NCBI GenBank assembly: GCA_037447605.1
Contig: CM074820.1
Location: forward strand, 1,426,001 to 1,490,000
Length of the DNA stretch: 64,000 bases
Reading direction: 5' to 3'
DNA from: Zygnema circumcarinatum SAG 698-1b
Lineage: Eukaryota; Plantae; Zygnematophyceae
Below are positions 7,083 to 41,988 of the stretch, piece by piece. The notes under the pieces are model-generated. The model had not been told where the DNA came from, did no database searches, and saw nothing but the letters and a program-made list of their open reading frames with translations. The position numbers and the translations under genes were made by a program. Every line of letters begins with the position of its first letter. The stretch's first letter is position 1.

Positions 7083-10000
7083 CTAAAAGCAGACAGCCAT
7101 CGTGCAATTCCCTCCCTTCCCTTCCTGCCCCTCACAGGCCAGGTCGTCCAGCCATGCGTCAATGTCGTCTTCCTTTTTCTCCCCCTTCTCAAAGCGATGA
7201 TACGCTTTCTCCGCCCTCTGAATGCACACCACCCCTGCCGAGTAGTCGTCTTTGAGGAGGTCCTCGACGAGCAGATCGTCGCGGCGTCTCCTCTCCTCCT
7301 CCCCCTCCTCCCCCTCCTTCTCCCCCTCCCACCCCCTCTCCCGTGCGAGCTGCTCCGCCCTCCTCGCGGCGAGGCGGTGGCGGTGCACGGCGACGCTCCA
7401 CGAGGACACGCCGGTCCCCAGGAACACCGCCGACTGGATGCACATCTCCTGCTCCAAGATGGAGACCATGTGGTTGCCCAACTGTGACCCACCACCCACC
7501 CACCTTGCTGCAGATCAGATTAGGACAGGGAAGCAACCAACTCAGCTTCACGGCTAGCAACAACACAACGAAGAACCCATCACGCAGACTCGTCTCGCCT
7601 GCCGCAACAGACAATTGAAGAAGGAGAATGGCTAGAAAGGAAGAAAAAGGGACGTCTGTAGTTCAATTTCGAAGCAAATTGAAGAGGGATATGATGCACC
7701 CCTTACCGCCCACTGGTCTGGGCCAAGTCCCATCATTTTTCCTATCTCAATGTTGTCTGGAGTGGGTGTGTCCGCAAAGCCGGGCACATCACATCGCCAC
7801 AAACCCGCTACTTGGAAGTCCCGACTTCTCAACACTGTTACTACCTGAAATAGCCAGGTAAAATCCGGAATTCACAATGCTGCTGGACGAGTCTTACAAG
7901 TCCCCCTGTTAAAGATTTTACGATCACAGAAGCATAGGCACACAGATAATCCAAGAAAGGGCAAAGAAAAGGCTTGTAATCGTACAAGTGATCCATCATT
8001 GTGAAGATGCAACGCAGAGCATGCCCACCAATTGGCTACACACTATATGGGAATCTGTCATATCCAATTTTTCATGAGACCAAACGCATCTACACCTTTT
8101 CGCCTCCTATCAAAAACAACAGGGCACACAAATCGCAAGAAGAGCAGCTCAGCTCATTCCTTGCATCAAGGAAACAAGATTGTTCAGCTCAATCCGAACT
8201 AATCCTGCTCACTCAATGTATGCCTATTGGCTTAGCAGGCCTATCTCCACACACAAATGATGCAGCAGGTCGCTCACCTCATCAATAAATATGCATCCTC
8301 CTCGCCGCAACCAACCATCTGTTGCAAGCCAAATGGACTTCACTCCTGCTGCTTCGGCCATCTGAATTATAGCCGCTGACACATCGCGTAGCTCCACCTC
8401 TACTCCATAATGCATTGCTGCCCTGCCAGTACCCTCACACACCTCCTTCATTGAATGCTCCCATCATCGATCTCCCGAGCATGAAAGACTCACTTGCATT
8501 TGGGTCCCCTACCTCCACAATCGGATGTATTCGTCCATATAGGGTTTGTAGATGTTATCTCGGGTGAAGCAGGGTTTGCTCCCAAGTTGCAGCGAAGGAA
8601 GCAAAGGCCAGCTCCGCGTCTATGGCAGCCTGACTCCCAAAACCGCCAATGCACTGCAGAGGAGGAAACAACGACTCCAAGTTTAGCTAACTCAACACAC
8701 CTTCCAACACAAGTGTAGGTCCATCTTTAAAAGTCCAAACACGCTCAATCTCAATATGACTGAAACGCTGTTCCTCCCCTCACTCTTGAATTGAACTAAT
8801 ACGTGGGCTCTTTCCTATAAGCCAGGATTGACAGTTGTCGAACCAGCTTTGAAATGCTTCTTCACAAAGACCCTTTGCCAATGCAAGGCTAGGCAAGGCA
8901 ACGCAAGGCAAATACTTCACGAGGAGGTGATTCTCTGATTCCTCTGGGAGTCAGGTCTGTGACCTAAACTTGTGCAAGCAAAGCTTGACCATAGTAAGTA
9001 CTCAACTGTGTGCATAATCCTCTATTAAGTCTGCAAACCTTCTGCCTCCTTTTGCTCTTCCCCTTTCCCAGGAATATTCTAAGCTGTACAGCTCATGTAA
9101 AACCTTCAGTATCCTACAGAATCGTGAAACCCACCGGCAAGATAGGGCTCCAACGACCCAAATACCAAATCCCTCATGTTTTTTGCCGCTGCTATCACCA
9201 TGTCTGTGTGCTGCAGAAAGTAGCCCACAGCAAGATAGGCCCCCCGCCAACGCAAGCCGGGGAATGCGCCTCCCACCCCCATGCAGCGTTGTGGAATTGA
9301 GCCACATGATTCAGCCACATCAGAAGGATTTCCCCAATGGCGGTAAATTTCTCTATTCTCCACCTGCAAGGCCAATGATATTGGTTTTGGGAACGGCAGC
9401 TCTACGACACTAGTCACTCCAACAAGTTTAAATAGAGTGCTTCACACTGCACCTCCTCCTGATTCTTCCTGACCACAAGTTTTCGAAAGGTTTTTGTAAA
9501 GTTCGTCAATTGACCTCTTTTTCTGAGGTAATTTACCACTTAAGAGACCTGGAATCGGAGTTGTCGACCATACAAAACATCACTATCTGCTAATCAATCA
9601 GAATTCAGCACACGGAACTTCAGCATATCTGCACAGAGTAACCAGCCAAAAAAAACTGCCCTATGAAAAACAAAACGACAACATGCAGCTTTGTTGCGAC
9701 AAACCCCAAACATTCAAACCCATTATCTATTCTGCAGATAGTACCATGGTCCCTGACTCTACCTCCAGGAGTCCTAGCTTAGATCCACTGGCTGGAAACA
9801 CACCGTTGTATCCGAAACAGTTTCCCATTGAAGACTGTCATCTGAGTGCATTCCTCGCAACTTGTAGAAGATACCCAGTCTTCCTCCACAAGCATCTGCT
9901 GACATGCACTTCTCTATGGAGGCGAGTGGCACAAAGCGTGCAAGTACGCTCAAGTTGTAGCGATCTCCAACATGCATCCCCAAATCCGGGAGTACTCTAC

Positions 10001-11426
10001 TTCCTGGCACTGTCCTTGATTACAGGGAGACCAGTGTAAGTATCAGTAATGCCAGAGGAAAAGGACAGCATTTCAGATGAACGCAAACTTCAAAATGCTC
10101 CAAAAAATCAATCGGAATGATCAAACATTGCAAATCATGGAACGTAGTGATGCAACCATAGAGCTGGTAAGAAAAACCTGCTATGACTTTGCACTGACAT
10201 ACTTGCCTTGATATGCGCCACGTGGTCAACACATAGATAGCTAAAAAATGGAGCATAGAATCATAGACAGACGCGCTGATATGAGGGATCCAAATGGTGA
10301 GGTGGCAAAACCACACGGACTTCATCGATCGATGATTTTGGGGACAAAGGATTTACATTGATGATGGTGGGGTCCACCATTGAAGGATGGGAGGCATAGA
10401 GTACGGTTCAACGTTCGGGCCATCACCGCAGCTGAGATGAACTCAATGAGCTGATTGCTGGCTCCAGATCTTAACGAAAAAACTGGAATCAAATAGCGCT
10501 GATCAGCGGAACCTGTGTCCTGACCCTGATGCAAGGTTCAAACCAAAGTGATTTGATATTGTAAATAACTTGCACTAAGAAACGTTTTTAGAATCCATTA
10601 GAATCCATAACCTCTGTTAGTCCAGGGAAACAAAGTTCACACTGTGCTGGTCCTGAAACGTTTGCTGATGACAGCCGAGTACTGTTACCTTCTTGAGTCC
10701 CGGAAAAGAAAATTGGGTCTGGATCCCCAATCTTATTAGAAAACTGAAATCACTAAACTGTGATGTCTTTTTAACGAATGTTACAGAACGCTTGGCTGAT
10801 GTTCTAAGTTAACGAGCACAAACGACATAAAAAATAACTCGAAACATAAGGCTGAGTCCCTGAACTGAGATTGTCTACTAATTGTCTGAAATAAATTTGT
10901 CTACTTCGAAATACAGCGGACATTTTTCAACGAGTGGAGTTAGGAGGATTGAGGACAGGAGTGAGAATACCAGTGAATATCGCCATGGTAAACTGAAAAC
11001 TAAGTGCGTCAATTCCCAAAGGTATAATTTCGCAAAGGTAAAAGACTTGCATTAATTCTATGACAATATTATGATATTGCGACTTCCATAGCACAAACTC
11101 GGACTAAATGTTTGTGCTTGCAGCACCACACAAACATAAATGGAGACAGAAAGCACACACTGAACACAGAGGGTCTCTGCAAGTAAACATAAAAAACCGG
11201 TGGAATAATCCTGACATGTGGTGTAAGATATGGAGTCTTGCTTGCTGCCGCTTCGCATTGACAGACTTATGGTTGCGTTTGCTAGCATCGTTAGATTTCA
11301 ATTTTTTTGTCGTAGAACGGCTGCACCAACCTCAGGTTGAGCTTCCCCGTGACAAAAGAGAAGCAAAAGGCAGCAGAGCGCGAGAATTCCAGCCTCATAG
11401 CGGCCGCCAGCCGCCGAGCTCGCCAT
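7083..11426 (-). CDS. GDP-fucose protein O-fucosyltransferase-like glycosyltransferase (paralog A), with N-terminal signal/anchor
   Basis: About 8 exons. Motifs YLIPVF...GASNQLIEFISAAVMARTLNRTLCLP, VHWRFWE, IWLATD and LEQEMCIQSAVFLGTGVSSWS match the POFUT/GT-B pattern. Same exon structure as 38623-41988. Confidence 0.78.
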
Positions 11427-11561
11427 CCTCCCTCCCTCCCAACGCGCAGGACAGGCTGCGTGCTGCGTAAGGATGGACGTAAAATTATTATTATTTGTTT
11501 GAATAGGGGCTGGTTTAAAAGGAGATCTATACACCGCCCCTTTTTTTGGTTATCCCGCCCC

Positions 11562-11985
11562 TGTATGTAACGACATTTATGTAACAGAATTTATGTAACC
11601 GAATGTGTGTAACAAAATGTATGTAACGGAATGTATGTAACAGAATGTATGTGGCGGAATGTATGTAACGACATGTATGTAACAGAATGTATGTAACGGG
11701 ATGTATGGAACGAAATGTATGTAACGGAATGTATGTAACGGAATGTATGTAACAAAATGTATGTAGCAAAATGTATGTAACGGAATGTATGTAACAGAAT
11801 GTATGTGGCGGAACGTATGTAACGACATGTATGTAACAGAATGTATGTAACGGGATGTATGTAGCAGAATGTATGTGATGGGATGTAGAATGTATGTAAC
11901 GGAATGTATGTAGCAAAATGTATGTAACAATATGTATGTAACGGGTTGTATGTAACGGAATGTATGTAACGGGATGTATTGTAAG
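11562..11985. repeat. Minisatellite of about 14 bp (consensus ATGTATGTAACGGA), roughly 30 degenerate units
   Basis: Tandem TGTATGTAAC(G/A)(G/A)A units; they produce the HSVTYI/LHT low-complexity ORFs in the track. Confidence 0.93.
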
Positions 11986-11999
11986 ACAACCGTGCCAAT

Positions 12000-12158
12000 A
12001 GGGGGTGTCAGACTTAAAAAATTTCAGTACGCGTGTTCGTAAGTTTGACATCAGAACGAGTACTCCAGTATAATCGCGATCCTCCTGCGGCGGAGTACTT
12101 TCGTAACCTTTTTTTTCGTAACGCTTTTCGTAAGATTTTGTTAAGTCTGACACCCCCT
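12000..12158. mobile_element. 159-bp MITE family 1, second copy, TSD AAT
   Basis: Same TIRs as 3163-3321; I see 2 substitutions between the copies; AAT at 11997-99 and 12159-61. Confidence 0.9.
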
Positions 12159-12542
12159 AATGGTCGGCAACCGTTCCAATGATTCAGGCCGGTGTTCCAT
12201 TGGCAGTGGACGGAGTGTCGTACGGTCAAAAAACGACGCCCCGGCAGGGTTCCATGGAGCTCCGATTTCCAGTCAGAGCTCGCCACGTGGACAATTTGAG
12301 ACCTGGTACAGTACTGGAACTGCAAACCAGAACTAAAACTGAAACTATTGATCATAGAGCGTCCAGGACATCCTGCAAGGACCGGATTTGCAGAGAGACG
12401 CTGCCAGCCTCACATCCTCTCGCTCGGACTCGGCCTCGGCTTCTCTCTCCCGCTCTTATCTCCCTCGCTCGCCACATCTCCCTCTCTGCTCGTCACTGCC
12501 TCCCCTTACGCTCCTCCGCCTCTCACTGCGAGCTCGGCAGCC

Positions 12543-15500
12543 ATGGCTGTCGCGAGGCACGCGGCTACGCTGCAGCTGTCGGGACTGCAGTCGGACAGCT
12601 GGTCAAGGAAGGGGTACGTGCAGCTGTTCTGGTGCTGTAGGACGAGCAGAGAGAGAGAACAGAGCGCATGGTGCAGCATTCAGTTGAATGATTGGGAGCC
12701 AAGATGCTGGGACCTGTTGCTCCAACATTCCTCTAACAACGCTCAAAGAGGCTTATTGTAGTGGTGGTGTGGTTTGACCTCCAGCACGCTTTAGACATTC
12801 TTGCATGATGATGTTACAACCGTGGTGTTGAAGCTATCGCTGGCCACAGCTCCAAATCTTCCACGGAGGCCCTCTCCCTCCCTCTCTCTCCTCCCTGCGT
12901 CTTCGTTCCTTCCTTTACTTTTTTTTTCACTTTGTCGTTCTTTTTTTTCCGCCTCGATTGATTGATTCTACCTACCAAGGTGTCGTCTGGAATCTCAAAA
13001 ACTGCTGCTAAGAAAACAGCTGAAGACAGGCTTCATTCCTGCATTTTGAATAGCTACGGGGCTGGACAATTCTGGGCAATGCAGGAGTGTCTTCAAGTCT
13101 ATTGCTTTGAACTTGATTTTTTTTCCTTGCTCAGTTTGTGGGGCTTGCAATGTTACAGGCATGGCCTTTCCTTTCTTTCCCTTTCAAACTTTGATTGAAG
13201 CTGTTTGTATAAAGACAAATGGCTAATTTTTAAATGATTCTTGGTTTTAGCTTTTACTCTGTTTTATTTTCACGGGCGGATGCAATGCACTACTTGCCAT
13301 CCATCTTGTTTGATAGTTCGGCAGAACAGGATTCGAGGACTCGTTATCTGGAGAAGTATGGACTTATGAATTGAGTGAAGAATCTGTGGAAACTGCACAG
13401 TTGAGGGAGCAGTGCTGGTGAAGATGACTTGTGCAATTTGAGTAGTAACACTGCAGCTGCAAAAGGTGTTTGCAGGCCGTCACAGAAAGGTGGTCAAGGT
13501 CAACTTTCATCATGACCTTTGTTGATTCACTGATAGGGAGTGAAATTGCATATTCCTCTTTCCAATGATAATCGCTTTGCGTTTAGACACACTAGTGCGA
13601 GGGCATTTCTCATTGCATATTTTTGTATTCTTGGTTGAACAGGAACAGTCAGAGAAGCCTTGCTAAACTGCAGATTAACTCCTTTGCTGGACTTCGAAAG
13701 TCAGACGCACTTGTGCGAAGCTCAAATGACCAGCTCGATTTTGTTGATCAGGTAACTTGAAACCTTTTATACGCGCTCTGTCCCCCTTTTTGTCTCATGC
13801 TCCCTCAAGAACGCCCTCAAGCAAACAGTCTTACAAGGCCATTAAATTGTTCATTTGTATAGCTCTTACTTGTCTGAGGAAATGTACCTAGCTCAGTGTG
13901 TTGCTGCATCAATACGCATTAACAGCACCAATATTCCAGGATTATCTGTGTGTATTTTAGCCAAAACTTGAAACTGAAGACGGCTGCATTTCTCAGCCCA
14001 AAGCGAGAGGGAAAACTGACCTGGGCTGCACGACGTTGTTCTAGAGTATTGGCTTGAAGATATTATAATGCAAAGGTTTCTCTTTTTGCTTAACTTATGT
14101 TGTTTCGCTTGCACGGGGATAGGTTCGGCACATCACAGCATGCAGGAGCTCCAGAAGAACTGTTATGGCAGTGAAGTCTGCATATGTTCCTCCAAAGAAA
14201 ATTCTCATGATGGGCGGTACCCGGTTTATTGGAGTGTATCTCGCTCGGCTTCTTGTGAAGGCTGGACATGAGGTGCGAGCAACCACCATATTAATCCTTC
14301 TGCAAGTATCGCATTGTGGAACATGAAATGAGAAGTTTATTTACGTGGCTGACTCATCATATTGGAGTTTGTACACTAGCCTCTACGAGTAAAAAAGTTG
14401 GCAATGGAGTGAATAAATGACCCAAGTAAATAAGAGCGACAAAGGCATCTGACATCTGCTTGAGATATGGGGTAAAGGGGAACTAAATTTACTTAATGTG
14501 TGGTCAATTTGTAACAATAAACGGCGGGGTTGGGTAGAGCCTCATTGGTGGAAATTCAGGCCAGATTCAATGGGTGAATGGATTAACTCTTAAATTCAAA
14601 CTCCACTTTTATGAAGGCAGAACAAAAGAATCATCATATTGTTCATTGCTCCAACACAGATTCAGGTGCAGCACTAAAAGCTTGCAAGCTATTAACCCTA
14701 GCACATTCCATCTAATCATTTTGTCTAAATAGTGGGTATGCATCACTTGGCCTGCACATGTGATGCATTTAACAGCAGAACGATTAGCTTAACCTTCTTG
14801 CTATTCATTTCCAATTCAAGTATCACCGTCCTTGTAGTGGAAGATGGACAAGGGCTTGGCTTGATAACTACTTTTCAACTTTTGCAGGTGTACCTTTTCA
14901 CGCGTGGGAAATCTCCGGTCACATCACAGCTGCCGGGAGAGTCTGACGCAGACTACCGAGCATATTGCAACAAGGTACTGCATGCTCACACTCTTGTGGG
15001 TCTGTTATAACGAGCTTATGGCGAGCATTATGAACGTTAGAGACCATGGCCAGGCCTTTTACATTAAATGAAAGACATCATCTGGGTATTAGCGTAAGGG
15101 CATCAGTTAGTGGGTAGCTGAATTGCATGGTGGATATCTTAAGATCCCGCAGGTCAGTGCTAGGTCTCCGTTCCTTGATATGGAAATTCAAGAAACGTTT
15201 TGACAATCTGTTCTGCAAGAAGGATATGTCCAGCAAATTAGTCCACTAAGGTCCTCGATATGGGATACTACATTGTGCAGGTGAAGCACATTAAGGGTGA
15301 CCGCAAGGACTACGCGGGCATGAAGGCACTCATCTCCAGAATGAATTTTCAAGTTGTGTACGACATTAACGGTGAGGAGAAAATGTAGTAGCGTGTCTGA
15401 CGGGAATCTCACTCTAAGGCTCAACAATGCTCACCAGGAGAGGTAGTCAATAGAGCCGGTAGTAAGCGTTCTGACGAAATGAGCTTTTCGTTGCTTATCT

Positions 15501-17465
15501 GCAAAACTTGCTTTTCTATATCTCTATGCCGTTCGTCCAGAAAGGAATTGCATTAGGAAAGGGAACTCCATTCCAGCTTGCACTTCAGCTGCTGCTGCGT
15601 ACATCGGAAATTGCATTTTCTCTGCTACCTTCTGCCAAATTCACCATTCACTTATGCTCACTGCCACTCTGTAGTCCAGCCGAGGTTCTTTTTCCTCTCT
15701 TCCATTTCCACAAATGAACCTCTTCAAAAGTGTTCTCGACTGTTCTTAACTTTCTCAGTAACGATCCCAACTTACATGCTTCGGCAGCATAGTGCAGAAG
15801 ACAAACAGTCCTTGATGCACGCTTTTTTCCATGCAAGGTCCACAGGTAGAGATGCGGAGGAGGTTGCACCAATCCTTGATGCAATCCCTAGACTGGAGCA
15901 GTAAGTTCAACTAGAGCCAATTTCTATCTTTTTTGAAAGGAATGGGTATCAGTTTCTCAACACCAACGTGGTAAAAACTTGCTTTTGATGAAGAGGATAT
16001 TTGCTTTGAATTTTCTGGGCGCATCAAACGTTGCTTCATGACATCTGGATGGATCTCCTGATTCTGTTAAGTCCTTTGATATCTTATCAAATTATTTAGA
16101 CCTTCGAAATGTTTGGAAGTGGATAGTGGCCATGGATGAGTATTCCTGTCATCTTCTAATGGTTTTGGAAGTTCATGCCCTCACTGCATAGATCGAGATG
16201 GAAAGATGAGCCTTAATCATTGTTGGAGACATCTCATGCTTTCCATTCTTTTCCATTGCAGATACATCTTTTGCTCATCAGCAGGTGTCTACCTCAAGTC
16301 AGACCAGCTCCCACATCGCGAGGTAACTTCCATGCCTGAACTGCACTGCATGAATGCTTCATGTAAGCTTGTACCGGAATGTTCTGCTACATGCTGCTTT
16401 CCCTATTTGCGAAGGAGTTCTTGAAGTTTCGAACTGCTCTACCCTTTGCTTGCTTTCATGGCACGATATTCGTAAACTGTGTTTGCTATCCAACAGCATC
16501 CTTTATCAAAAAGTGAAATTATTATTGACGTTGCAGGTGGACGCAGTAGACCCTAAGAGCCGGCACAAGGGTAAGCTTGACACTGAGGACCTTTTGGCAG
16601 CACGAGGCGCTCCATGGACCTCCGTTCGGCCAGTTTACATTTACGGACCGCTTAACTACAACCCTGTAGAGGAGTGGTTCTTCCAGCGCCTTGCAGCTGG
16701 CAGACCTGTCCCCATTCCCAGCTCAGGGATGCAGGTCACCCAACTCGGCCATGTGAAGGTGGGGCCATGGAAGCTCGTTTGGGCTGCAGCATTACTTCCT
16801 TCAGAGCATTTGCACCTGAAACTCTGAAAGCCCACCCAGCTGCAGTTCCATTCCTGTTAAGAACGTCTGAGAGGGAATGTGCAGTTCCGAAGATGTGCAG
16901 GGTTTTCTCTTTTCACATGGAAGTGCTGTTTCTGCAATTTCTGCAGGATTTGGCACGGGCCTTCGTACTTATGTTGGGGAACGAAACAGCTCTTGGGCAA
17001 GTGTACAATATTTCTGGGCCCAAGTATGTCACCTTTGATGGCATCGCCAACGCATGCGCCAAGGCCATGGGCCTGCCTCCCCCGCAGCTTGTACACTTTA
17101 ATCCCAAGGAGTTCGATTTTGGAAAGAAGAAATCGTTCCCTCTGAGGGACCAGGTGACGATTCCCCCATTTCCCATTTCTAATTAAAGGCCCTAAAGTCC
17201 TCATCTTCTCAAAGTCGACGCTTTTTGTACAGGCCATTGGAGTAAAAATTGATCAAATGGGTTTTCTATGCTGCAGCATTTCTTTGCATCAAATGAGAAG
17301 GCGGAGAAAGAACTCGGCTGGACTCCGGAATTCGGGCTGGTGGAAGGTCTGAAAGACTCGTACGATTTGGACTTCGGAAGGGGCACATTCCGGAAGGCGG
17401 CGGACTTCAGTACTGATGACATGATCTTGGAGAAGCTCGGGGTCAAGATACCTGTGTCTGTGTAA
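12543..17465 (+). CDS. CSP41B: Chloroplast stem-loop RNA-binding protein CSP41b (NAD-dependent epimerase fold)
   Basis: 10 exons. Transit peptide, then KKILMMGGTRFIGVYLARLLVKAGHE, VYLFTRGKSP, YIFCSSAGVYLKSD, DAVDPKSRHKGKL...RPVYIYGPLNYNPVEEWFF, FDFGKKKSFPLRDQ, HFFAS...FGRGTFRKAADFSTDDMIL. Confidence 0.96.
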
Positions 17466-17843
17466 AGAATGTGTGGCTGCAGGGCTGCAGATATGCAGAA
17501 ATGCTCTGGAACCGCCAGTAGAGGCTGAGCAGGAGCATGTGAACGAGGCAGTGCAGGAATGTGCAGCTAAGCATAGGTGGTATTTCCTGGTAAATTATTT
17601 TCAGTGTTTTTATGATTGGATTTGTCCAAGTTTCGTATAGTGGTAATAGGCAGCAAGCTGCAAACAATCCAAGACATTCACCTTCCGTGTTGGGTTGGGC
17701 AACGAGGCTGCTTTGATAGTTTCTGCTTTGAGCTGTGCGCTCCATGCACGAGTGTGGTGGCGAAGGAGGGAGAGGGAGGGAAGCCACAAGAGCTTCTCGC
17801 GGCTATCTACTGTAAAAAAATCGCAATGTTAGCCCTGGCATAT

Positions 17844-18189
17844 TCAACGGTCAAAATCCCAAAGTCAGGCACGGCCAACGGTTGGTGTCGTGCGTGTGGT
17901 ACACGTGGCATATGTGACGGCTACAGTACAAGCCCACGTCCTGCACGTCGGCTGTCCAACGGTCACAACTCGCAAAAGGTTCACGTGACAGGACCTATCC
18001 AACGGCCATAAATCCTGCTTGTATTTATCCAACGGCCAAACCCCCCCACAAACGCACGTGGCATATCCAACGGGCAAAAGCTCACAATCTCTTACGCGGC
18101 TGCCCAACGGTCGTTATCCCGCGATGCACACACGAAACGTCCAACGGCCGCAAGCAACGAATGCCGCTCGTGGCGATCGAACCATGCAT

Positions 18190-18244
<55 letters not shown>

Positions 18245-18332
18245 GCCGTACCGTACATAGGGCGTAGGGCGTAGGGTTACTGAACTGCGGTCGACTCGCG
18301 GGCCGCGGCTCAACGGTTGGTTCCGCCAACGG
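17844..18332 (+). promoter_or_regulatory. Cluster of 10 same-strand CAACGG (MSA-like) motifs plus G-boxes, upstream of gene C
   Basis: CAACGG at about 17845, 17876, 17957, 18000, 18030, 18068, 18105, 18142, 18312 and 18327. Function is inferred only. Confidence 0.4.
18184..18243. repeat. (CATGCC)n microsatellite
   Basis: About 10 tandem hexamers. Confidence 0.95.
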
Positions 18333-19634
18333 TTGGACGCGCCCAGCCGCAGGCCGGCCTGGCCCTGGCCCCCTGACCTTCTGACTTTTCGCAGGACCGA
18401 ACTCGGCACAGGCACAGGCCAAAACAAAATGGGGAGCATTTTGGGTGTTATCCGACGGCGGACATCGCCTTGAATCCGCGCTGGAGTCCACGTGGCGTTA
18501 TCCTGGCCGTCTAACCCCACGCCCTGCCTCTCTGCCTGCCTGCCTGAAAGCGCCCGCCGCCCATCGTCTCCCGTCTTGTCCCTGCCGTACGGTTCGTACC
18601 CCCTCGAGCCGCGCTTCGCACGAGCGAGGCACTGTCCTCGAATCAGGATCTGCCATTTGTTATCTCGCACGAGCGAGTCAGTGTGCAGGCGGCCGCCCCC
18701 CTCTCACGCCCGCTCCGCCTGGCGCCCCCTCTCTCTCCCTTCCTCCTTCCCTCCCTCCCTCCCTCCCTACCTCCCTCGTCCTCCCTCGTCCTCGCCCGCC
18801 TGGACGTACGGGCGGAGCTTGCGGCCATGAGGGCGCAGGCGTGAAGTTGTCGAGGTACTGTATGCGGAGCGGGCGATGGCTGGGGGGGGTGGGGGGGGGG
18901 GGGGGGGGGNNNNNNNNNNGGGGGGGGGGGGGGGGGGGGGGGGTGGGGATGCTGAGGGAGTGGCCGATGTGAAGGAGTTGAGTTTATAGTTGAAAGTGTC
19001 TGCGACGCTCCACTGCAACGTCTGTTCGGATGCTCGCGTCACATCAGGAGCATTTGTTGGAGACGTAGCGGGTGCTGCGCTGCTGTCTTTCTGTTGCGAT
19101 TGTGGAAAGTGGAGCATGGATAATGACTGCAACGTCAAGCTGTTTGCATGCAGGAGGCTCAAGTACTGCTGTCAGAGGTTGATTTCTTTACTTATTTTTT
19201 AGTTCTTTTGTAGTTCCTTACTGCAATTTCGTTCATTTTGTTTCAGTAAACAAAATGCTTGTTTGAGCGCGAAGGCTGCTACAACATGCTACAGCATGAT
19301 CGAAGTAAAACATAGCACTCGACGAGTACTTTCGACAGAGTAATTTTTCTCTACTTCTTGTGATGCACGTCCGAAAACTTTTTGTTTTATTGCATGACTT
19401 TAGAAATGTGTTGCGTTCCTTCATTTACCCACAGATCAAGTGAATTTCCAACTTCAGAGAATCGTATTATGCACTATGTAACCGGTGCAATGTGCATAGT
19501 TGGAGGTGCTGGGAAATCGTGGCGAATGTGGCGTCATGGAACTTTGACAATAATGCTTCTAAGATCTTTCCTCACACCAAGCACTTGTTTTCTGTGCAGA
19601 AATCCTTGTTACAGTGGAACAAGTGAGGACTAAC

Positions 19635-29649: not shown

Positions 29650-30094
29650 AAGGGAATCGAGTCCCCTTTCCGCTCCCACGTATGGCAATTAATCCATGCA
29701 TGGCAATCACGTCCATGGCATGGCAATCGCATGCATGGCATGGCATGTACCTCGCTCGGACCCGGGTCAATGGGCAATCCTGCGCGCCGCTCTCAACCAT
29801 AATTTGGAATCTCCCCAGGACCATCACAATGTAAATAAAATAAAAGATTTAAAAAACACAGTTCTCTTCAAATCCTAACACATTTAATAGAATTTCTATT
29901 GAATTGAAACGCCGTTTCAAACGTACAGAACGAGCACTAGACTAACATTTAGTACGCCTTGAGGTGCTCCAATAAATCGCCTAACCAAGCTAACTAACTT
30001 TAACCATTTAAAAGTAAAAAAAATTGTCCCTTCCATTACCCATCCAGCAATCCCTCCCCTTATATTCAACCAACATCAAGTTATCCCTTCAAAG

Positions 30095-32909
30095 CTAATA
30101 CTTTATCCCATTCAGGCTCAAGTAACCTCGGGACATTTTGCCCCCTGTCATGCGGAGCTCATTCACAAGTTGGGGCCCATTGGAGGCGAGTGCTCCTATA
30201 AAGTAATCGCAGTCTGCTGCAATCATGAGGTTCACTATGTAGCTCGCCTCCATGGCTGCCTGGTGATCGCTGTCACGGAAGTACATGTGACTGGAAGCAG
30301 AACCATCATGGCGAGCTTCATTGGTGTAGTAGAATCTCCAGTCTGAATATCCTTCTGCTGCTTCAACAACACTCTGCAGGAGCAATAGAGCTGAGGGAAG
30401 TGGTCACTGCTTCAGCAATAGAGTTGACCATAGATATCAATATCCATAGTCAGCTCTCAGCAGACCAATGTTAAAGCCGATGAAAGAAAGGACATCGCAA
30501 AGAGGAGGACACAAATGCATAGAAGTGAACACGCAAAGTGTTCGGAATCACATAAGGAAAGCGTTCCTTTCCATGCAGAAAAGACGCACCTGAACTTCAG
30601 TGGTGAGCCAAATATGGTGAATGTCAGGAGCATGGAAACGGAGCCTTTCCGCGAGCCACATGTGAGCAGTCATTGTGAAGAGCTTCATCTCCTTCGCTTT
30701 ATCCCCCAACCTCACATGCATGCTCACTATGGGACGAGGCATGTACGGTTCGCTGCGACTCCACACACTGCCTTCTAACGTTGACCCTGTCAAGTCTGCT
30801 GCACTCAGTGCAAAAAACTCATCTTTTGCCCTTCTGCGACTCATCATGGTGAGATGTCTCAGCCCTGTCTCTGCAGCAGCAATATGAGATGCCACGTGGC
30901 GGCCAAATGCATCATGGCGAGCACGGTTCATGAGATGGCAGAGGTATGCGGAGGGATGACGCATCAGAAAGCGAACTGCTTGCCCTCTCCACCATAGGTC
31001 CTGCAGCACAACATGCAGACTCAGTCAGTCAAATTCGTTTTGCATAGCTCAAACGGCAAGAGAAGATTGAAGATAGAAGATTTATCTTCCGTAAAGATGA
31101 TTACCACAGAAGGAAGGCTGGTTGATCTTCACAACTCGAGATCAAATCTACATTCATTCTGGAAAGGGGATGCAGCCGCCACGACAACGTATTGGATATG
31201 CGAATGGGTCAGTCACAAACATAGGATTCTGAATAGCCGGCCAAGAGATGGAGGAAGGGGCAGAGTGAGCACATAACACGCGAATGATACTCCAAAATAT
31301 AATGTATAATATTTGATCCATCGGAGCGAAATTAGGGTTTTCATTAGGGTTTTCCGGTAATACATGAGTGACTCTGCGGCTTCTCCCCAGCTCCTCGAAG
31401 GAGTCCCCAGATTCTTTCCATGGTTCGCCCCATTTCCTGCCACGTGGCGTAAAATCCCCTCAGCTTCAAGCTGAAAACTTACTTCTCTTCAAAGAAATGG
31501 TCACTTACTCGCTCTCCGCATTCCGACCGACAATTTCACGATGTGTAAGTTTTCTTCTCCTGCCTATTTCCTATCCTTTTCGCACATCAGGACAGTTTCA
31601 ACGAGATCTTACGTGTAGGAAATGTTGGACCGAATAAATGGTAGCAAATTTGACAATGTCACCAACGGCGCATCCGATGCGAAAACTGCCCACACAGTGC
31701 TTTCAGTATAAGAAGGAGAGCCATGGCGGAGCAAGCCTGCAGCTCGCCTCTCACACTCAGATGATGTGACGGGAAAGAAGTAGCAGTTCAGAGACCCCTT
31801 CCTCTCTCCTGCACACATAAAAAAGCCGACAATGACAATAAGGAACAACAACAAAGCAGCCAAAAGACCACTATCCTCTCCGCCAATGGTGCAATCTTTT
31901 GCCTAACAATGACACCACACTTTGTTTAGGGAAGAAACTATGTACCCTGGCAGCCGCTGTGATCGGCCCGGAAAAACGTCCCCATTTGCGGAACGAGAAT
32001 TCTATTGCTGGCTAAAGCGAAGTTCAAAGCGGAGGCCATGAGGTGAATCTGGGAGCCGAAGCCATGCGTTTTGCTTCCCCATTTCACGAGCAGGAAGCGA
32101 TGCTCGGAGCTGCTGCAGTCCGCAGGAAACTGGTGTAGCCAAAGGTCCGTCTGCACCCTCCTCGTCTTCGCCAGATTGTCTTCATCTGCACCTTTCACCT
32201 GCGTGGAGACAAGCAAACAATTCCAATGCATAGGCTATAAGAATTTCAGCGTTAATGGAGTATTCTCCGATCGTGTAAAGCAAGAGGTACGAGAAAACTG
32301 GGAAAGATTGCATGCATACGCAAGGCACATACAAACATGCATACGTGCATGCAAAAACATTCATACTTACACACCCACGGAGGCCTGGGGTTCTCTCCAG
32401 CAGCCCATGCAGGGTCTACGCCTTCCGGGCCTCTCGATTCCTCTCCCTCTCTCTCCCTCGAGCGCTCTAAGCAGTCTTCCAAATGAGGGGCCCATGGAAC
32501 CGCTGTTCCGTTGGCATCCGTCCATACAGCTCTTCTTGCTACCTTCTTCGATGGCCCCGTGGCGTTGCTCAGATCGTAAGTTTCCGTCCATAGCTGCAGG
32601 AGATGGAAGCGACGGCTTAACCTCCACTTGGGGTTCAAATAGAGCTTAAAGGTTGGTTGCTTTCTCCTACCATCATTCAATTTAACGAGTGCTTACTTCA
32701 AAAACGGGTGTACTTTCACTACAATTTGAAGGAGCGAGAGAGTGCATACACCCCCCCACCTCATGTATCTCCCGTGCGCGGATGCTTGTGCGGGCATTGC
32801 GCCCGGACGGTACTTCTCCGGAATGCTTCCCCTCTGCTGCGATGCACAGACCTGCAAGCACCTGCAGCGCGAGCAGCGCGAGCACCTGTCTCCCCCCCCC
32901 CCGCCCCAT
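30095..32909 (-). CDS. Alpha-1,6-fucosyltransferase-like (GT23-like) paralog D
   Basis: Same exon structure and motifs as C: [86 protein letters not shown] and MTGGKMSRGYLSLN. Confidence 0.88.
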
Positions 32910-33364: not shown

Positions 33365-35083
33365 GGGGGCGACTATTTACAGTGTACTTCTTCTGAATGT
33401 AGTGTACGTTTTCGCCGGGCAGAAAAAAAAGGTTTTTTTTGGCGAAAAATGCTGTTTCACACTTTTCAGAATAGATACAGACCTTTTTTCGTCGGATGTA
33501 CGGATGATGATTTGAAATGTACGAAGCGCGCGCGTCTACAAGGTATAAGGGCGCAACACGTGGAGCGACGTGATTGGTTGCGGTAACATATGACGTGGCA
33601 AGTATGTTTGGGACCGTGACGTGACGAAACGAGACGCGACAAAAGTGGAGTCCACGGATGAGCAGTCGGAAATGGCGCGAATTAAAACTGACAGATTTTT
33701 CCTGAAACACGCTACGTTATGTGCCCTATCTTTTTCTGTCAGTTTTAATTCCCGCCATTTCCGACTGCTCATCCGCGGACTCCACTTTTGTCGCGTCTCG
33801 TTTCGTCACGTCAAGGTGCCAAACATACTTGCCACGTCATATGTTACCGCGACCAATCACGTCGCTCCACGTGTTGCGCCCTTATACCTTGTAGACGCGC
33901 GCGCTTCGTACATTTAAAATCAGCATCCGTACATCCGACGAAAAAAGGTCTGTATCTATTCTGAAAAGTGTGAAACAGCATTTTTCGCCAAAAAAACCTT
34001 TTTTTTTCTGCCCGTCAAAAACGTACACTACATTCAGAAAAAGTACACTGTAAATAGTCGCCGGAAAATTCTATTCTCACACCTTTTTTGTCTACACACA
34101 GACCTCTTTTCGCTGGGCAGATTTTAAAATAGACAAAAAAGGAAAACACCTTTCACACCTTTTTTTTTTTCACCTTTTTTTTCACAAGTTTTTGGAATCG
34201 ACACACGCTACTAGTCCTGAGCGGCCGAGCGCCGTGAGACCTTTTTCTGTCGGGCAGATTTTACTCCTTATCATTTATTTTCAGAGAAAAAAATATCTGC
34301 CTGCCCGAATCCGCTCGGAGCGGAAGATCCGTCCGCCACGAGATCGTTCGCGGGTGGCCGTCCTTCACACGTGCAATAATTTTCCGCCGTCGATATTCAC
34401 GCAGATCGCACCATGGCAGATCACCGTTCGATCAGCAGCCGGGCTCTGTCCCACGTGTCCCACCCAAGCCGGCTCCAAGGACCGTACAAAAGGCGTACGC
34501 CCGCAGCTTCGAGGAAAGTCAAAAAACGTAATAATTAAAGTTGTGCCTGTACCAATCACAGTTTGCCACGTTTAAAAAGAGCACGCGGCAGATGATGATT
34601 GGTTCAAGCTCGCAATGTAAGGAATTTAGACTTTCCTCGAAGCTGCGACCGTACGAGCTGTGTACGGACCTCGAGCCTGCTCGGGTGGGACACGTGGGCG
34701 TGTGCCATTCGCTGGAACCGAGCCCATCGAACGGTGATCTGCCGTGGTGTGATCTGCTCTAGAATCGACGGTGTATAGTTTCTGCACGTGTGAAGGACGG
34801 CCACCCGCGAACGATCTCGTGGCGGACGGATCATCTGCTCCGAGTGGATTCGGGCAGGCCGATATTTTTTTCTTTGAAAAAAACAAGAAGGGGTAAAATC
34901 TGCCCGATGGAGAAAGGTGTGTATCGATTTCAAAAAGGTGGGAAAAAAATGGTGAAAAAAAAAAAGGTGAGAAGGTGTGAAAGGTGTGTTCTTTTTTTGT
35001 GCTATTTTAAAATCTGCCCGTCGAAAAGAGGCCTGTGTGTAGACAAAAAAGGTGTGAGAATAGAATTTTCCATAGTCGCCCCC
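33365..35083. mobile_element. Composite foldback (long-TIR) non-autonomous element: two fused palindromes with outer TIR GGGGGCGACTAT
   Basis: P1: arms 33370-33695 and 33735-34062, near-perfect. P2: arms about 34063-34520 and 34630-35083, imperfect. TTGTCAA flanks both outer ends (33358-64, 35084-90). Confidence 0.85.
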
Positions 35084-35242: not shown

Positions 35243-35385
35243 ATGGTTCAGGGTTTAAGGGGTCAGGGTTTAAGGGTTAGGGTTTAAGGTTATGGTTCAG
35301 GGTTTAGGGGTTAGGGTTTAAGGTTATGGTTCAGGGTTTAAAATTTCAGGCTTACGGTTTCGGGGTTTCGGGTTCAGGGTTTAGG
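35243..35385 (+). repeat. Degenerate interstitial telomere-like repeat (TTTAGGG/TTCAGGG variants)
   Basis: About 18 imperfect GGGTTT(A/C) units. Confidence 0.75.
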
Positions 35386-35907
35386 GAACAAAAGAAAGGG
35401 AAAAATAAATCTGTGTTGAGCTCCAACTATTTGGGGCGCTTCTGGATGAAGATAAGCTTTTGGTGTTTAAACATGAAACCCCTATTAAATATCCTTATGG
35501 TCCGTGTCTTTCTTTCTTCCTTTGCTGTTGTCCAAAGCTCTGCCAGCTCGAAGGGTTCACTATTACTTTTCTGAAGGGCCATTTTCACATCTGAACATTT
35601 CTCGCCTCACAGGGCGCCCTCAGCTGCAGCCCCTCCCCTTGAGAGGCCCCTGCCCGACCCTGCCCAGCAATTCAGAACACTCATCAATGCAAACAGCGTC
35701 GCCAAACTGCATCCCATGATGTCACTGATGTAACATCATCCCATACATTAGCAAACACGGAGAGCTTGTACAAAGGGTGCAGGGGTTAGCTTCCTGCAAA
35801 TGCTAAGGTCAACATGTAATCTCCATACTTAACATCTCCAAGGAGATGTAAGCCCAAAAACAGCCCACTCCTCTGTAATCTGTTTGGTGCGTGGAAAGGC
35901 CCTTTGT

Positions 35908-35982
35908 AGAGGTCATGAAAGTTCAAGGCCCCGCCTGCGACTGGCGCTTTCTGCCGAGCCTGTCATGTATTCACAATCCTCT
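35908..35982 (-). promoter_or_regulatory. SECIS element (form 2) in the SelT 3'UTR
   Basis: Minus strand AGAGGATTGTGAA-TAC-ATGAC-AGGCTCGGC-AG-AAA-GCG-CCAGT-CGC-AG-GCGGGGCCT-TGAA-CT-TTCATGACCTCT. It contains helix I, the AUGA/GA quartet, helix II, an apical AAA and a mini-stem. Confidence 0.88.
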
Positions 35983-36096
35983 GCGCCTCCACACATCCCT
36001 CCCACACCATGCATGAAGGCATGGTGCATTGCAGGAGCTGAAAGGACATGGCCATGGCCGTCCGCTTTCAACGCCATGATTGAGCAGCTGAAAGAC

Positions 36097-37994
36097 CTAA
36101 TCCCGGGTCCGCAGTGCAAGACGAGTCTGCTCAATGAGCTCAGCCTCAGACGGCATGCGATTCTCCGCCAGCTTGGAAAATATCTGCACGGACAGATCAT
36201 TGTAGTCACTAACAGCAAGCACTCTCCATCACCAACATATGAATTACTTCAGTCGCTCCAGTATCAGCATCTGTATTTTGGAACCTGCTTTCAGAGCAAT
36301 CTAAACTTTTCCCTTTCCCTCCTTCTACCAGCTAGGTGGTGCTCTGCAATGCAGCCTTACCATCCTCCCATTGTAGGATACTTCGAAGGCGCCAGTGCTA
36401 AGAAGCCCGCTGTGCATCACATTCCCAAGTATCCAAATGCCAGCTGCCGCCCCAATCTTGTTCTGCTGAATGCTCATATACCACGATGGGGGCTGAATGA
36501 TGCCCAGAGCTGGGAATATGGCATCACCCGCAAATGTAATGGCTAAGCCTGCAAGCTGCCCTGCTCCCACAAGGCGGGAGAGGAGAACATTCTGCGGAGG
36601 GGGAGGATGATTTGCGAGAGTAACCGGCACATCTGGAAAGTGGACATGCAAGACCTCCTTTACCTGCATGGCCACATTTCTGCAAACGCAGGACAAAAGC
36701 ATGTTATACCTACCTCGTCTCTCGTAAACAAAATTTAAAATGGCTGAAGAGCAAGCCTAACGGTATCTCTGTAAACACTAATAGCCTGCGCTTACCATGG
36801 TGTGTGCTGCTACCTGTCTGTGCTACTGCTTGATGACTGACTGAGTCTAACCTACTGATTACTTATGCAGGGCAGCTGTGGTTTGAATGGCCTGAACTTA
36901 ACCAGTAAATGCATGCCAGTGTCCTAACCACATAGCCATACGAACAATATTCATACGTCAGTGCAGAGAGGTCCTAAGTGAACAGATTTAGGCCTATAGG
37001 AGATCAGGGTGATGAGGAGGCACAGGCCGAAGGACCACATCATGCCGCATACCAGCGCATACTTCTGAACATGAATTTATGCAGGGCTATGGAATATTGC
37101 TTAAGTCAGGCCCTTAAAACATACTGCTGCCCCTGCTACAAAGTCGTACAAGACTCAGAAGGCATCCTCTAACTCAACAGAAGTAAGGAACAGCCTAAAA
37201 GCAGCCTAAAAGACAGAAAGCGAGACTGTATAGGAATGGAAAACAAAGAACAATAGTAAGGGTTACCTGTAAGATCACGAAGTGCAGAAAGAAATATGGA
37301 TGTTGCCATTCGCACTTCCTTCCGATGTGCTCGCTGCGACCAACGGGCGTTCACTTTCCATCTTGACCTGTCAATTGAAGCCAGCGATAGGAATTAGCTT
37401 CAGGTGCGCCTTGGGAGTTTCAGCGCACAAGTAGAGGCTTTAATTTCTCCTTTTGCTGATCCATCAGTAAGGGAACTGATATAGTACCGGCTGAATATGT
37501 GAGCTGCCTAAAGATTGATTGTATTATGAGGCTGAAAGCTTTAAGAGCCTCGCTGAGATTGTTAATTGCATATAAATTAAGTCAGGGTTTTTGAATCACA
37601 AGGCGAAGGCAAGGGTTAAAGCTTAGTACCAGACGAAGGTAGTGGAAGCGAAGAAACTGTATCCACGTATTTTGTTGGTAGATTTAGGACTGTTTATGTT
37701 TCTTCGAGTAATACTGGCTCGTTAGCTGTTAGCTGTTAGATGATATTGGCAGCTAGTCGCTCTACATGGCCAAAACTGGAATCGGATCTGTTCTGGTAAA
37801 CTTCCACAATAAAATAAATTGTCAACAAGCAGACTGAGGCAGGGATGCGAGGTGGAGCCAGCCCCCTGCAGGCGCACCTGAGGGTCCGCCTCCGCGTCTG
37901 CCCCCGGCGGCTGCAGCGCTCGCCAGACGTCGCCTCCCAGCACGGCGAGCAGCAGCGCCGCCAGCAGCGCCACCCCTCTCCACTCCCCGGCCAT
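36097..37994 (-). CDS. SELT: Selenoprotein T (SelT) with Sec-encoding UGA at 37277-37275
   Basis: Exons 37994-37878 (signal peptide), 37367-37267 (...NIHISF-C-T-S-U-SYR), 36679-36361 (NVAMQVKEVL...LANHPPP...LLSTGAFEVSYNG) and 36183-36097 (IFSKLAENRMP...TAG). The UGA aligns with the second residue of the SelT CxxU/CxxC motif, and a SECIS lies downstream. Confidence 0.93.
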
Positions 37995-38257
37995 GCCTGC
38001 AGACGCTCCCCTCCCCTCCCCTCAGGCAGGAGGCGAGGCCTTGCAGGCGCCACGAGGGCACATGCTGCGGCCATGGGGGGGGGACCCCCAGCAACATGTG
38101 CCTGGCAATCTTCCAATGGCGACATGACACGTGTACATACATGCCTACGTGGCGAGCCACAATTGGAGAGGCTCGGCCCGGTTCGCGGTGAAGGCCCGGC
38201 GCGCTTTCTGGAGGGCTCTCCTCTCCTGGCAGGCGGGCAGGCTCATGGACGCCTGGC

Positions 38258-38402
<145 letters not shown>

Positions 38403-38622
38403 ATGGATGGTGAGCAGCATGGTGTGATGGTCATGATGGTGATGGTGATGCCCATGCATGCATGCATGTCGAACTGGCATGTTGCTGGATGATGGATGAT
38501 GATGATGATGATGATCTCCGCGCGGCGGCGCTGTGAAAGGGGCGAAGGATGGGCCTTCTAGGAGGAGTCACAGGACGGAGCGGAGGGGAGGGTGCCCGCC
38601 CCCCGCGGGCAGGTAGCTCGCC

Positions 38623-41600
38623 ATGGCGGGCAGGTCGCCTGCTTGCAGCGTGCTCATGCTGGCAGCACTCTGCATGGCTGCGGGGTTTCAATACGTCTGG
38701 GCTGACTCAGAGGTTCGTACAAATGTCTCGACTTTCCCATAGTCCTTCTCTGTCCAAGCACAGAACCAAGCAGAATAAAGTTCGTTCCACCAGTTCCTCC
38801 TGTTATGTAATGCAGTTTGCTAAATGGTTGCAGGAAAACTTATATTAGCGCATCCTGGCATCCCGGTTCACGTTTCACAATGTGCTGTCTGGATTCTCGT
38901 TCCTTATGTGGTGTGTGTTCCAGGTTACGGATACTGCTTGCCGTCGATACTTGGTTCCCGCTCTCACCTCCAGAACTGGAGCCAGCAATCAGCTCATTGA
39001 ATTCGTCTCAGCTGCTGTGATAGCCCGAATTCTGAACCGCACGCTATGCGTCGCACCCTTCACAAAGGGACCCAACTTTCATCAGTGTAAGTCCCCTTTG
39101 TTCAATTCATTAAGTCAACAGTCTTCATGCTTACATGTTGTGGGACCATCTACAGCTTGGGTAAAGAATTTCTTCACTCGGACAATTACATGAAAGCATC
39201 AATGGCGCAGCCCATACGTTCTTGAGTGGGCTGTTCCCCCGGCTCTCCAAGTTTGTAGAACTGTTTGCATGGAAGTCATGATTCGGCTTCAAGCATCGGT
39301 GCAGGGTTTCTTCCATTCTCATGATCAAGGCAGTGAAGCCGCACTCCCGACCTAAGTTTGATTAGGATTCTTGTTCCCCTGACTTGATGCTGAGCATCTG
39401 CTGCTGAGTGATGAGATGATGAGGTTATCATCACGTGAGGCCATATCGAACCTTCCTCAAAGTGAACAAGATGATGTGTATTATAATGCTGGCACATTGT
39501 TTAGGGGGATACATCATTTGGAAACAGTTCAATGCTGGAGCAGAAGCACTTTTATCTTTACACGGGGAAAATAGTGAAACGAAGACATTATTATGAAATT
39601 AGTAGCGCTGATCGTTGTTTTTTTTGGGAGTTATGGGCAGTGCCAGGACAAGATGTCGTGCCGGATTTGGGAATACATGTGGGAGATCGCTATAACTTGA
39701 GCATGCTTGCACGCTTTGTGCCATTAGCCTCCTTAGAAGAGTGCATGTCAGCGGACGTTTGTGGAGGAAAGCTCGATATATTCTACAAGCTTAAAAGGAT
39801 GCGCTACGAAGACAGCTTTCAATGGGAATCAGTTGCTAATCAAACGGTAAGCTCACGTGATTTCCAGCCCTTGTTGAACCGCCAGTGTTGATCCACCTGA
39901 CCATGGACCACTGTGCAACATGGAGGCATTTGCTAGTTTGCTGAGTAGCAGACAGTTGTGTGTTCTGAAGCTTGCAAGGGAGTGGGCAGTTGGTAGTAGA
40001 ATTCACATTCCCTCACTTGTCGTGCCATGAGAGAGCATTACATGATTAAAACCAATTGCCAGATCGAGCGCAGAGAACTCTACCGCTATTGGAAGAACCC
40101 TTCCGACGTTGCTGCACTTTATGGCCCCGACCTGCGCTGCTGCATGGGGATGGGAGGCTTGTTTCCCGGCCTGCGATGGCGGGGGGCCTTTCTGGCTATG
40201 GGGGCATTCTTGCAGCACACAGACATGGTGATTGAAACAGCAAAGAAAATGAGGATGCTTGCTTTCGGATCGATGGAGTCATATGTTGCAGGTGTGTTTC
40301 ACGTTCTTTACACTTTCATGCGTGAGTTTGAAGCAAGCTGAAGTTCATTAATTTCTACACGTTGGGAAGAAAGTGTGAGAAAATCTTTATATGTTCGAGT
40401 TGGGTATCAAGGAAAACCGTTGGCCTTTTGAGAACGAAGATTGGGGATACAACAGTGAGGTGGAGTTAAACTCTTTGTCGGAAGACGTTATTCTTCTTCA
40501 TCTAATGTTGGGACCCTTAGTGAAATTGTGATCGAGCTCAGAAACACTCTTCTTTCTCTTAATGCGCAGTGCATTGGCGATTCTGGGAGGCCGGCTGCCA
40601 TAGACATGGGGTTGGCCTCTGCTTCCTTCGCTGCACCTTAGGAGCAAATCCTGCTGCACCTGAGATTCCCTCTTTAAACCCCATATGGCAGAATGGTAGC
40701 AGCTGTGGAGGTACATGACACACCGACCAGTCAACATTCTTGAATTGTAGTTTACTACCTTGCATTGCCTGTTTGTTTGCTGTGACTCTGGGTGGTTGTA
40801 AGAGTGTTCAAATATCATTCTATGTGTTAACCTGAAACTTCAATAGCCAATAGTAACTGACACTGTGAAGCTTCTGGCAGGGCAGGAATCGCATTATGGA
40901 GTGAAGGTGGACCTTCGAGATATCGCAGCGGCTGTGCTTGAGGTTGCGGAAAGGGCAAAAACTACAGCTGTGTGGTTGGCCACGGATGGCTGGTTACGAG
41001 AAGGAGGGTGCAATCTAATTGCTCAGGTGAGCTGTGAGCAGTTTTATGTATGGAACAGACTATGAAAACTGTAGGCTGCCTACCCTAGGAGACGATGGTT
41101 TAAAAAACGTTTTTCTCAGTAAGAAATGAGCGTTTTTCGGCATACCCAGTATCATCACGATTCTTGATCTTGTAACATTCTTACTGTCACTGGGGAAATC
41201 CGTCGCCGTTTCTGGATGCCTTGCAGGTCGTGACGGAATTGAGACGTCGGAACTTGAGAGTGGCGGGTTTGTGGCGATGTGATGTGCCCGGCTTTGCGGA
41301 CACACCCACCCCAGACAACATTGAGATAGGAAAAATGATGGGGCTTGGCCCAGATCAGTGGGCGGTAAGGGGTGCATCATATCCCTCTTGAATTTGCTTC
41401 GAATTTGAACTACGGACGTCCCTTTTTCTTCCTTTCTAGCCATTCTCCTTTCTCAATTGTCTGTTGCGGCGGGCGAGACGAGTCTGCGTGATGGGTTCTT
41501 CGTTGTGTTGTTTCTAGAGGTGAAGCCGAGTTGGTTGCTTCCCTGTCCTAATCTGATCTGCAGCAAGGTGGGTGGGTGGTGGGTCACAGTTGGGCAACCA

Positions 41601-41988
41601 CATGGTCTCCATCTTGGAGCAGGAGATGTGCATCCAGTCGGCGGTGTTCCTGGGGACCGGCGTGTCCTCGTGGAGCGTCGCCGTGCACCGCCACCGCCTC
41701 GCCGCGAGGAGGGCGGAGCAGCTCGCACGGGAGAGGGGGTGGGAGGGGGAGAAGGAGGGGGAGGAGGGGGAGGAGGAGAGGAGACGCCGCGACGATCTGC
41801 TCGTCGAGGACCTCCTCAAAGATGACTACTCGGCAGGGGTCTTGTGTGTTCAACAGAGGGAGCAGGCATATCATCACTTTGGGAGGAGGGAGAGGCTGGA
41901 GGATGACATTGATGCATGGCTGGATAACATGGCGTGTGAAGGGCGAGAAGGGAAAGGGGGGAATTGTTCGTTGGCAATATGTTTCTGA
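38623..41988 (+). CDS. O-fucosyltransferase-like glycosyltransferase (paralog B)
   Basis: Signal peptide MAGRSPACSVLMLAALCMAAG. Motifs GASNQLIEFVSAAVIARILNRTLCV, VHWRFWE, VWLATD and LEQEMCIQSAVFLGTGVSSWS. Exon-for-exon paralog of A. Confidence 0.78.

Follow-up and report, generated by a model that had tools for sequence, protein, structure and literature searches.

A 64-kb window of the genome of the streptophyte alga Zygnema circumcarinatum SAG 698-1b (64,000 nt; GenBank assembly GCA_037447605.1, contig CM074820.1, positions 1,426,001 to 1,490,000 of the forward strand; all coordinates below are window positions) contains two multi-exon paralogue pairs, here called A/B and C/D, that flank a single-exon GT37 gene in mirror-image arrangement. 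The genes follow each other in the order A (minus strand), CSP41b-like (plus), C (plus), GT37 (plus), D (minus), SelT (minus) and B (plus), the outer limits are set by the stop codons, at 7083 for A and at 41988 for B, and no further copies of the cluster genes were found within the window. The arrangement itself is confirmed. In our judgement the best and probable explanation of the locus is an inverted segmental duplication that took place in the lineage leading to this alga, rather than a functional gene cluster. The original prediction, which was made from the sequence without database searches, had seen here a mirror-symmetric set of five fucosyltransferase-family genes created by inverted duplication of an ancestral two-gene unit, and had proposed that they might form a biosynthetic cluster for a fucose-rich glycan.

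The predicted mirror order around the central GT37 gene was borne out by self-BLASTP of stop-free open reading frame (ORF) pieces, by self-BLASTN and by a repeat finder. In these comparisons A (7086-10537) matched B (38849-41985), and C (19925-23673) matched D (30098-32692), in inverted orientation and exon by exon, for C and D with E-values down to 4e-79. The encoded proteins are 72% identical for A and B (519 and 514 aa) and 60% for C and D (535 and 526 aa), and within each pair exon number and intron positions are identical, with eight coding exons in A and B and seven in C and D. All five reading frames are intact and all five begin with a hydrophobic N-terminus (signal or anchor), as had been predicted. 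The description of A/C and D/B as divergent pairs holds for their opposite orientation but not for adjacency, as the CSP41b-like and the SelT-like gene lie in between.

Gene A spans 7083-11426 on the minus strand, with coding exons at 11426-11331, 10519-10357, 10009-9804, 9363-9135, 8653-8498, 8417-8278, 7844-7700 and 7507-7083 and a signal-like N-terminus. Its inverted paralogue B spans 38623-41988 on the plus strand, with coding exons at 38623-38712, 38924-39086, 39641-39846, 40063-40291, 40570-40710, 40881-41026, 41227-41371 and 41564-41988; the two were modelled jointly, and GT..AG sites were chosen to maximise their mutual alignment. Gene C extends from 18780 to 23676 on the plus strand, including its 5′ untranslated region (UTR), and its product has a type II anchor. 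The coding exons are 19635-19770, 19992-20247, 20356-20610, 20875-21072, 21243-21315, 22647-23057 and 23398-23676; the junctions through the 21315-22647 join were taken from RNA, the last intron from alignment with homologues, and the start codon was placed at 19635. The model of D (30095-32909, minus strand; coding exons 32909-32760, 32593-32375, 32198-31946, 31808-31613, 31436-31364, 31000-30590 and 30373-30095) was derived from that of C. RNA contigs were placed on 16000-21840, and junction-level RNA support thus covers that stretch.

The gene-tree check suggested beforehand was run for the C/D family, and the resulting maximum-likelihood tree, with 40 members of the family, groups C and D as sisters at 100/100. 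Their mutual identity is ~60%, whereas neither exceeds 46% identity to any outside homologue. The sister relationship dates the duplication to the time after this lineage had separated from those of the sampled Netrium, Mesotaenium, Spirogloea and Closterium, and the C/D duplication is thus lineage-specific. Synonymous divergence (dS) is 0.83 for A/B outside a conversion tract described below and 1.33 for C/D, so that the divergence of both pairs is old and of similar degree; together with the tree this fits the predicted inverted duplication of an ancestral two-gene unit. The corresponding ratios of non-synonymous to synonymous divergence (dN/dS) of 0.34 and 0.24 indicate that purifying selection acts on both copies in each pair.

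The course of events could then have been as follows. An inverted segmental duplication would have copied a stretch holding one POFUT-like A-type and one FUT8-like C-type gene, and the duplicate would have been placed tail-to-tail with the original around a 6.4-kb spacer carrying the GT37 gene. Both copies of each pair have been retained under purifying selection, and the 3′ ends of A and B have later exchanged sequence through conversion between the inverted genes. One inverted duplication explains most simply why order and orientation are mirrored, and a single event would then have given rise to both pairs. The products would be Golgi-type glycosyltransferases.

The conversion tract comprises ~550 bp, takes in exon 7, intron 6 and the greater part of exon 8, and corresponds to 7255-7805 on the minus strand in A and 41266-41816 in B. 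Here the two genes are 94-100% identical at the DNA level, intron 6 included, and only 1 of 273 exonic nt differs, giving a dS of 0.016 compared with 0.8-2.1 elsewhere; the whole A/B block of 755 nt is 92% identical. The tract is therefore a product of recent gene conversion between inverted copies 33 kb apart. Inverted duplications with arm-to-arm gene conversion are known from the palindromes of sex chromosomes. The locus resembles these in its mirrored arms around a unique spacer and in the recent conversion between copies, but its arms are old and mostly diverged, homology is confined to the genes, and conversion is restricted to the ~550 bp.

Gene C is spliced and transcribed. Its 5′ UTR consists of an exon ending at 18852, an exon at 19245-19339 and a third stretch from 19600 onward into the first coding exon. 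The assembly gap in the window, an N run at 18910-18919 with a G homopolymer on both sides, lies within this region. Position 18852 was joined to 19245, with GT..AG ends, by RNA contigs in all four runs of the same organism that were used; these contigs are spliced and hence RNA-derived, and the join places the gap inside the first intron (18853-19244) of the 5′ UTR. No reading frame spans the gap and the coding sequence is unaffected. The RNA join shows that both flanks belong to one transcription unit and carries no information on the length of the poly-G run or on the continuity of the DNA. A paralogous copy at 28.9 kb runs uninterrupted through the corresponding G-rich run. This copy is part of a direct, non-inverted repeat of 0.8-0.9 kb, the first unit of which (18666-19464) includes the promoter, 5′ UTR exons and first intron of C, while the second (28795-29659, plus strand) is located between the GT37 stop and the D stop and adjoins the 3′ end of D. 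The 261-nt core of the repeat is 93% identical, far closer than the exons of C and D, and it may stem from a recent partial duplication, from conversion or from a mobile element. A telo-box-like sequence, AAACCCCTAAAACCCTAAA, at 28693-28716 precedes the second unit. In addition, a 5-codon upstream ORF (18827-18844) was noticed in the first 5′ UTR exon of C, and a minor alternative 5′ UTR exon (19152-19175) in one of the RNA runs, here called X1.

Several observations weigh against a single inverted duplication and should be kept in mind. No homology between the arms was detected outside the four genes (11.4-19.6 versus 32.9-38.6 kb, at the protein and DNA level), and no relics of CSP41b or SelT were found in the respective opposite arm. 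These two genes occupy mirror positions in mirror orientations, yet they are unrelated to each other and unduplicated. Because the arms are unlike outside the genes and each of these two occurs in one arm, a single event needs later losses or insertions; the mirror placement would fit reciprocal loss. The dS values are unequal between the pairs (0.83 versus 1.33) and near saturation, A/B lack an outgroup, so that the timing from the tree applies to C/D only, and the models of A, B and D are without direct RNA junction support. Finally, three distinct families of the superfamily within ~20 kb before duplication would be more than we should expect by chance, which is suggestive and leaves scope for a functional meaning of their linkage. 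Two or more independent events, for instance one duplication of the A-type and another of the C-type gene, or a direct duplication with a subsequent inversion, might also produce a seeming mirror. In favour are the missing homology between the arms, the unequal dS, the direct-orientation copy of the C 5′ region that adjoins the 3′ end of D, and the palindromes and telomere-like tract on the 5′ side of D. We nevertheless regard such a history as improbable, since the mirrored order and orientation of both pairs at comparable divergence are most simply produced by one event and the direct repeat, at 93% identity, is far younger than the C/D split. An assembly artefact, in the form of a false palindrome or a chimeric join, might be suspected where an N gap falls within the region. 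This was rejected, and its likelihood is negligible: arms that are 60-72% identical at the protein level are too diverged to be one locus assembled twice, and the gap is bridged within one transcript by the spliced RNA contigs.

A functional biosynthetic cluster, in which enzymes of the three families would work one after another on a single fucose-rich glycan of the wall or mucilage, linkage would be selected and the pathway would have been amplified by the duplication, appears unlikely, although it deserves consideration more than the alternatives just discussed. It draws on the presence of three families of the fucosyltransferase superfamily within 35 kb, on the intactness of all five genes with both pairs under purifying selection, and on the transcription of C and probably also of GT37 and D. 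Linkage in relatives was checked in the surroundings of GT23-like genes at eight loci, of which Closterium strains contributed five and Chara, Klebsormidium and Selaginella one apiece. At none of these eight did tblastn detect a gene of the A/B type or of GT37 in the 10 kb on either side, and at none was a neighbour annotated with PF10250 or PF03254. The conserved synteny that was to be looked for was therefore not found at these loci, and the mirror layout is specific to this lineage. Moreover, GT37 has been reported to be the orthogroup with the strongest expansion in Zygnematophyceae (PMC9915684), which makes a GT37 neighbour less surprising, and the donor sugar of A and B may differ, as the relatives of PF10250 include rhamnosyltransferases (PMC13010939). 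By a crude measure, the word depth of C was 531 in run X1 and 47-85 in the three other runs, whereas the word share of the GT37 and D stretch was 0.31 in X1 and 0.62-0.68 in the others. The latter values fit transcription of GT37 and D, which is probable. The run deepest for C thus had the lowest word share for GT37 and D, and in these crude data there is no sign of tight co-regulation.

The genes in between do not strengthen the case for a cluster. The CSP41b-like gene (14123-17850, plus strand) in the left arm is highly expressed, is covered by spliced RNA contigs, has an epimerase fold and shows weak PF01370 matches in its exons; the SelT-like gene (35908-37994) in the right arm is represented by minus-strand ORF pieces with a weak match to Rdx (PF10262). 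Nothing was found that links either to the glycosyltransferases of the locus. In the plant lineage, genes for cell-wall glycosyltransferases rarely form physical clusters. With the metabolic or biosynthetic gene clusters of plants the locus shares several non-orthologous enzyme genes side by side, but its members all belong to a single superfamily, and of the three kinds two are simply present in duplicate. The predicted fucose-glycan cluster is thus unsupported, and the tests made lean mildly against a joint function of the five genes in one glycan pathway. That POFUT-like, FUT8-like and GT37 enzymes share a fucosylated polymer of the wall or mucilage as their substrate, with the duplication doubling two of the three steps, seems slightly less likely still than the cluster as such. 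The inverted segmental duplication remains the reading that we prefer.

The original label of C and D as GT23-like was sustained by comparisons that went beyond the single exons. In Pfam searches with single exons of C and D we observed only a faint FUT8_N_cat match; PF19745 reached 15-18 bits on the exons and on full-length orthologues (cut-off 27.6), a precomputed PF19745 match exists in 10 of 77 family members, and full-length members (~550 aa) matched no Pfam family above threshold. With Pfam nearly empty exon by exon, the label came from the family profile and the fold search alone. A profile of the best-conserved exon retrieved 252 cluster representatives. Members of the family occur in Mesotaenium, Netrium, Spirogloea, Closterium and Chara, and a wider search with a profile extended the list to Klebsormidium, Selaginella and Nymphaea and revealed a large expansion in Closterium. 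When a profile of 24 family sequences was compared with the PDB, FUT8 was the sole match (E = 2.7e-10), with three co-linear blocks that include HVR..DK, and the models of C and D fit the family hidden Markov model end to end (E = 5e-178 and 6e-179, respectively). The AlphaFold model of the Mesotaenium orthologue P0012 (predicted local distance difference test score 86, predicted template modelling score 0.85), which stands for the family and not for C and D themselves, had FUT8 as its top 26 matches in the PDB (E = 7e-11 to 2.5e-8), whereas POFUT1, POFUT2, NodZ and AtFUT1 followed at E = 3e-4 or worse, at least six orders weaker. The same ranking was obtained with this model in a search of Swiss-Prot models. 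The C/D family is accordingly predicted to adopt the FUT8-type variant of the GT-B fold.

The motif of FUT8 for catalysis and GDP binding, HVRRTDK...E, has its counterpart in the HVRLGDK of C and D, after which a Glu is also aligned. The first Arg is conserved, as are the Asp, the Lys and the Glu, and the second Arg is replaced by Leu, or by Gln in the family consensus. A C-terminal SH3 domain of the FUT8 type was not found in the proteins, which end directly after the Rossmann domain, and the fold alignment of the orthologue spans FUT8 residues 65-492 and stops before the SH3 domain. Compared with FUT8, the alpha-1,6-fucosyltransferase of CAZy family GT23 (PF19745), the C/D family thus has in common an N-terminal helical stalk and catalytic domain, the G-x-G-x-Q-L-H and HVR..DK motifs and the aligned Arg, Asp, Lys and Glu. 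It differs in an identity of just 14-18%, in Pfam scores below the cut-off, in the absence of SH3 and in being streptophyte-wide and much expanded in Closterium. We found no characterised member of this FUT8-like family; GT23-like is a fair label for a remote, SH3-less and uncharacterised family found throughout the streptophytes. Local duplication is common in it. On Spirogloea scaffold s202, two GT23-like genes of different ancient subclades are arranged tail-to-tail (104477-109090, plus strand, and 109894-112719, minus strand), two more stand in tandem on Spirogloea s1, and several Closterium paralogues share contigs.

The central gene (26319-28217, plus strand) is a single exon with a 632-aa ORF, and its assignment to GT37 is solid. 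As had been predicted, it matches PF03254 (XG_FTase), with E = 1.5e-67 and 228.7 bits (cut-off 23.4), and residues 153-576 align to profile positions 58-471 of 475. Its homologues are plant fucosyltransferases carrying PF03254, with a best identity of 43%. A later start, Met52, is located immediately before the membrane anchor. Characterised plant fucosyltransferases of GT37 include AtFUT1, which acts on xyloglucan, and FUT4 and FUT6, which act on arabinogalactan-proteins. The central gene resembles these in its near end-to-end PF03254 match and its membrane anchor, and differs in its identity of at most 43% to any homologue found. Fucosylated xyloglucan is known from Mesotaenium (PMC8211770).

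The assignment of A and B to the fucosyltransferase superfamily is likely, and within it they resemble PF10250 and the POFUT proteins only weakly. Against PF10250, whose whole-protein cut-off is 31.5 bits, the single exons 2 and 8 of A scored 16.9 bits (E = 0.005, profile positions 12-43) and 14.8 bits (E = 0.021, positions 288-323), and exon 2 of B scored 14.4 bits, again below threshold, and also gave a weak match to DUF7810. In the PDB the four best matches of exon 2 were POFUT1 (E = 0.56-0.87) and exon 8 matched POFUT2 (E = 0.28), none of them significant. Of the O-FucT label given to A and B beforehand, the co-linearity of the PF10250 matches and the first rank of POFUT1 and POFUT2 speak in favour, but every match stays below threshold. 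A language-model search for look-alikes placed the last exon of A among fragments of the fucosyltransferase superfamily; with exons 3 and 4 of A it was uninformative. A separate homologue search with the last exon of A retrieved no short homologues, the length window having left out full-length relatives. In hhalign comparisons, A/B aligned to the GT37 and C/D families non-significantly and at two superfamily motifs only.

Relative to the PF10250 or O-FucT group (POFUT1 of GT65, POFUT2 of GT68 and the plant proteins of GT106, RRT and FRB1, as well as MSR and OFT1), A and B share an N-terminal nucleotide-sugar motif and a C-terminal motif III, each placed at the corresponding end of the profile, and for exons 2 and 8 POFUT1 and POFUT2 rank first or close to first among the PDB matches. 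They differ in that the middle exons match nothing, that all matches are sub-threshold, and that a C-terminal tail of 100 aa, acidic and then Cys-rich, extends past the last transferase motif. The tails (7086-7250 in A and 41820-41985 in B) gave weak SRCR-like matches (Pfam E = 0.047; PDB 9h0m, E = 0.012). Among the plant proteins with PF10250 there are UDP-rhamnose transferases (PMC7343896, PMC13010939), and the use of GDP-fucose by A and B is thus not assured.

The window also holds a number of repeats. Between D and SelT, a palindrome at 33368-34062 has 328-nt arms (96% identical) and a 39-nt loop, and a second one adjoins it at 34063-35071 with arms of ~500 nt (75%); the ORFs of both gave no match in Pfam, and both may be fold-back elements. 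Degenerate interstitial telomere-like tracts of the TTTAGGG type are located at 35243-35388 and 53766-53958. A long (ACTCCC)n array (21847-22434) lies inside the sixth coding intron of C, a 14-mer array (11520-11988) just upstream of the start codon of A, a (GGGCAT)n array (38222-38419) between the start codons of SelT and B, and a GA-rich array (25323-25564) upstream of GT37. A direct repeat of 166 nt (3157-3322 and 11994-12159, 98% identical, 8.8 kb apart) brackets gene A.

The locus offers a clean case of conversion between inverted paralogues 33 kb apart, which holds its value independently of the cluster idea. Should the genes form a true cluster after all, it would be a shortcut to enzyme function and would give a first functional handle on the uncharacterised FUT8-like family of streptophytes. 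That family, known from Klebsormidium and Chara through the Zygnematophyceae to Selaginella and Nymphaea, would remain of interest even if the cluster idea fails, and the locus in Z. circumcarinatum supplies two intact copies of it, of which C at least has been shown to be expressed.

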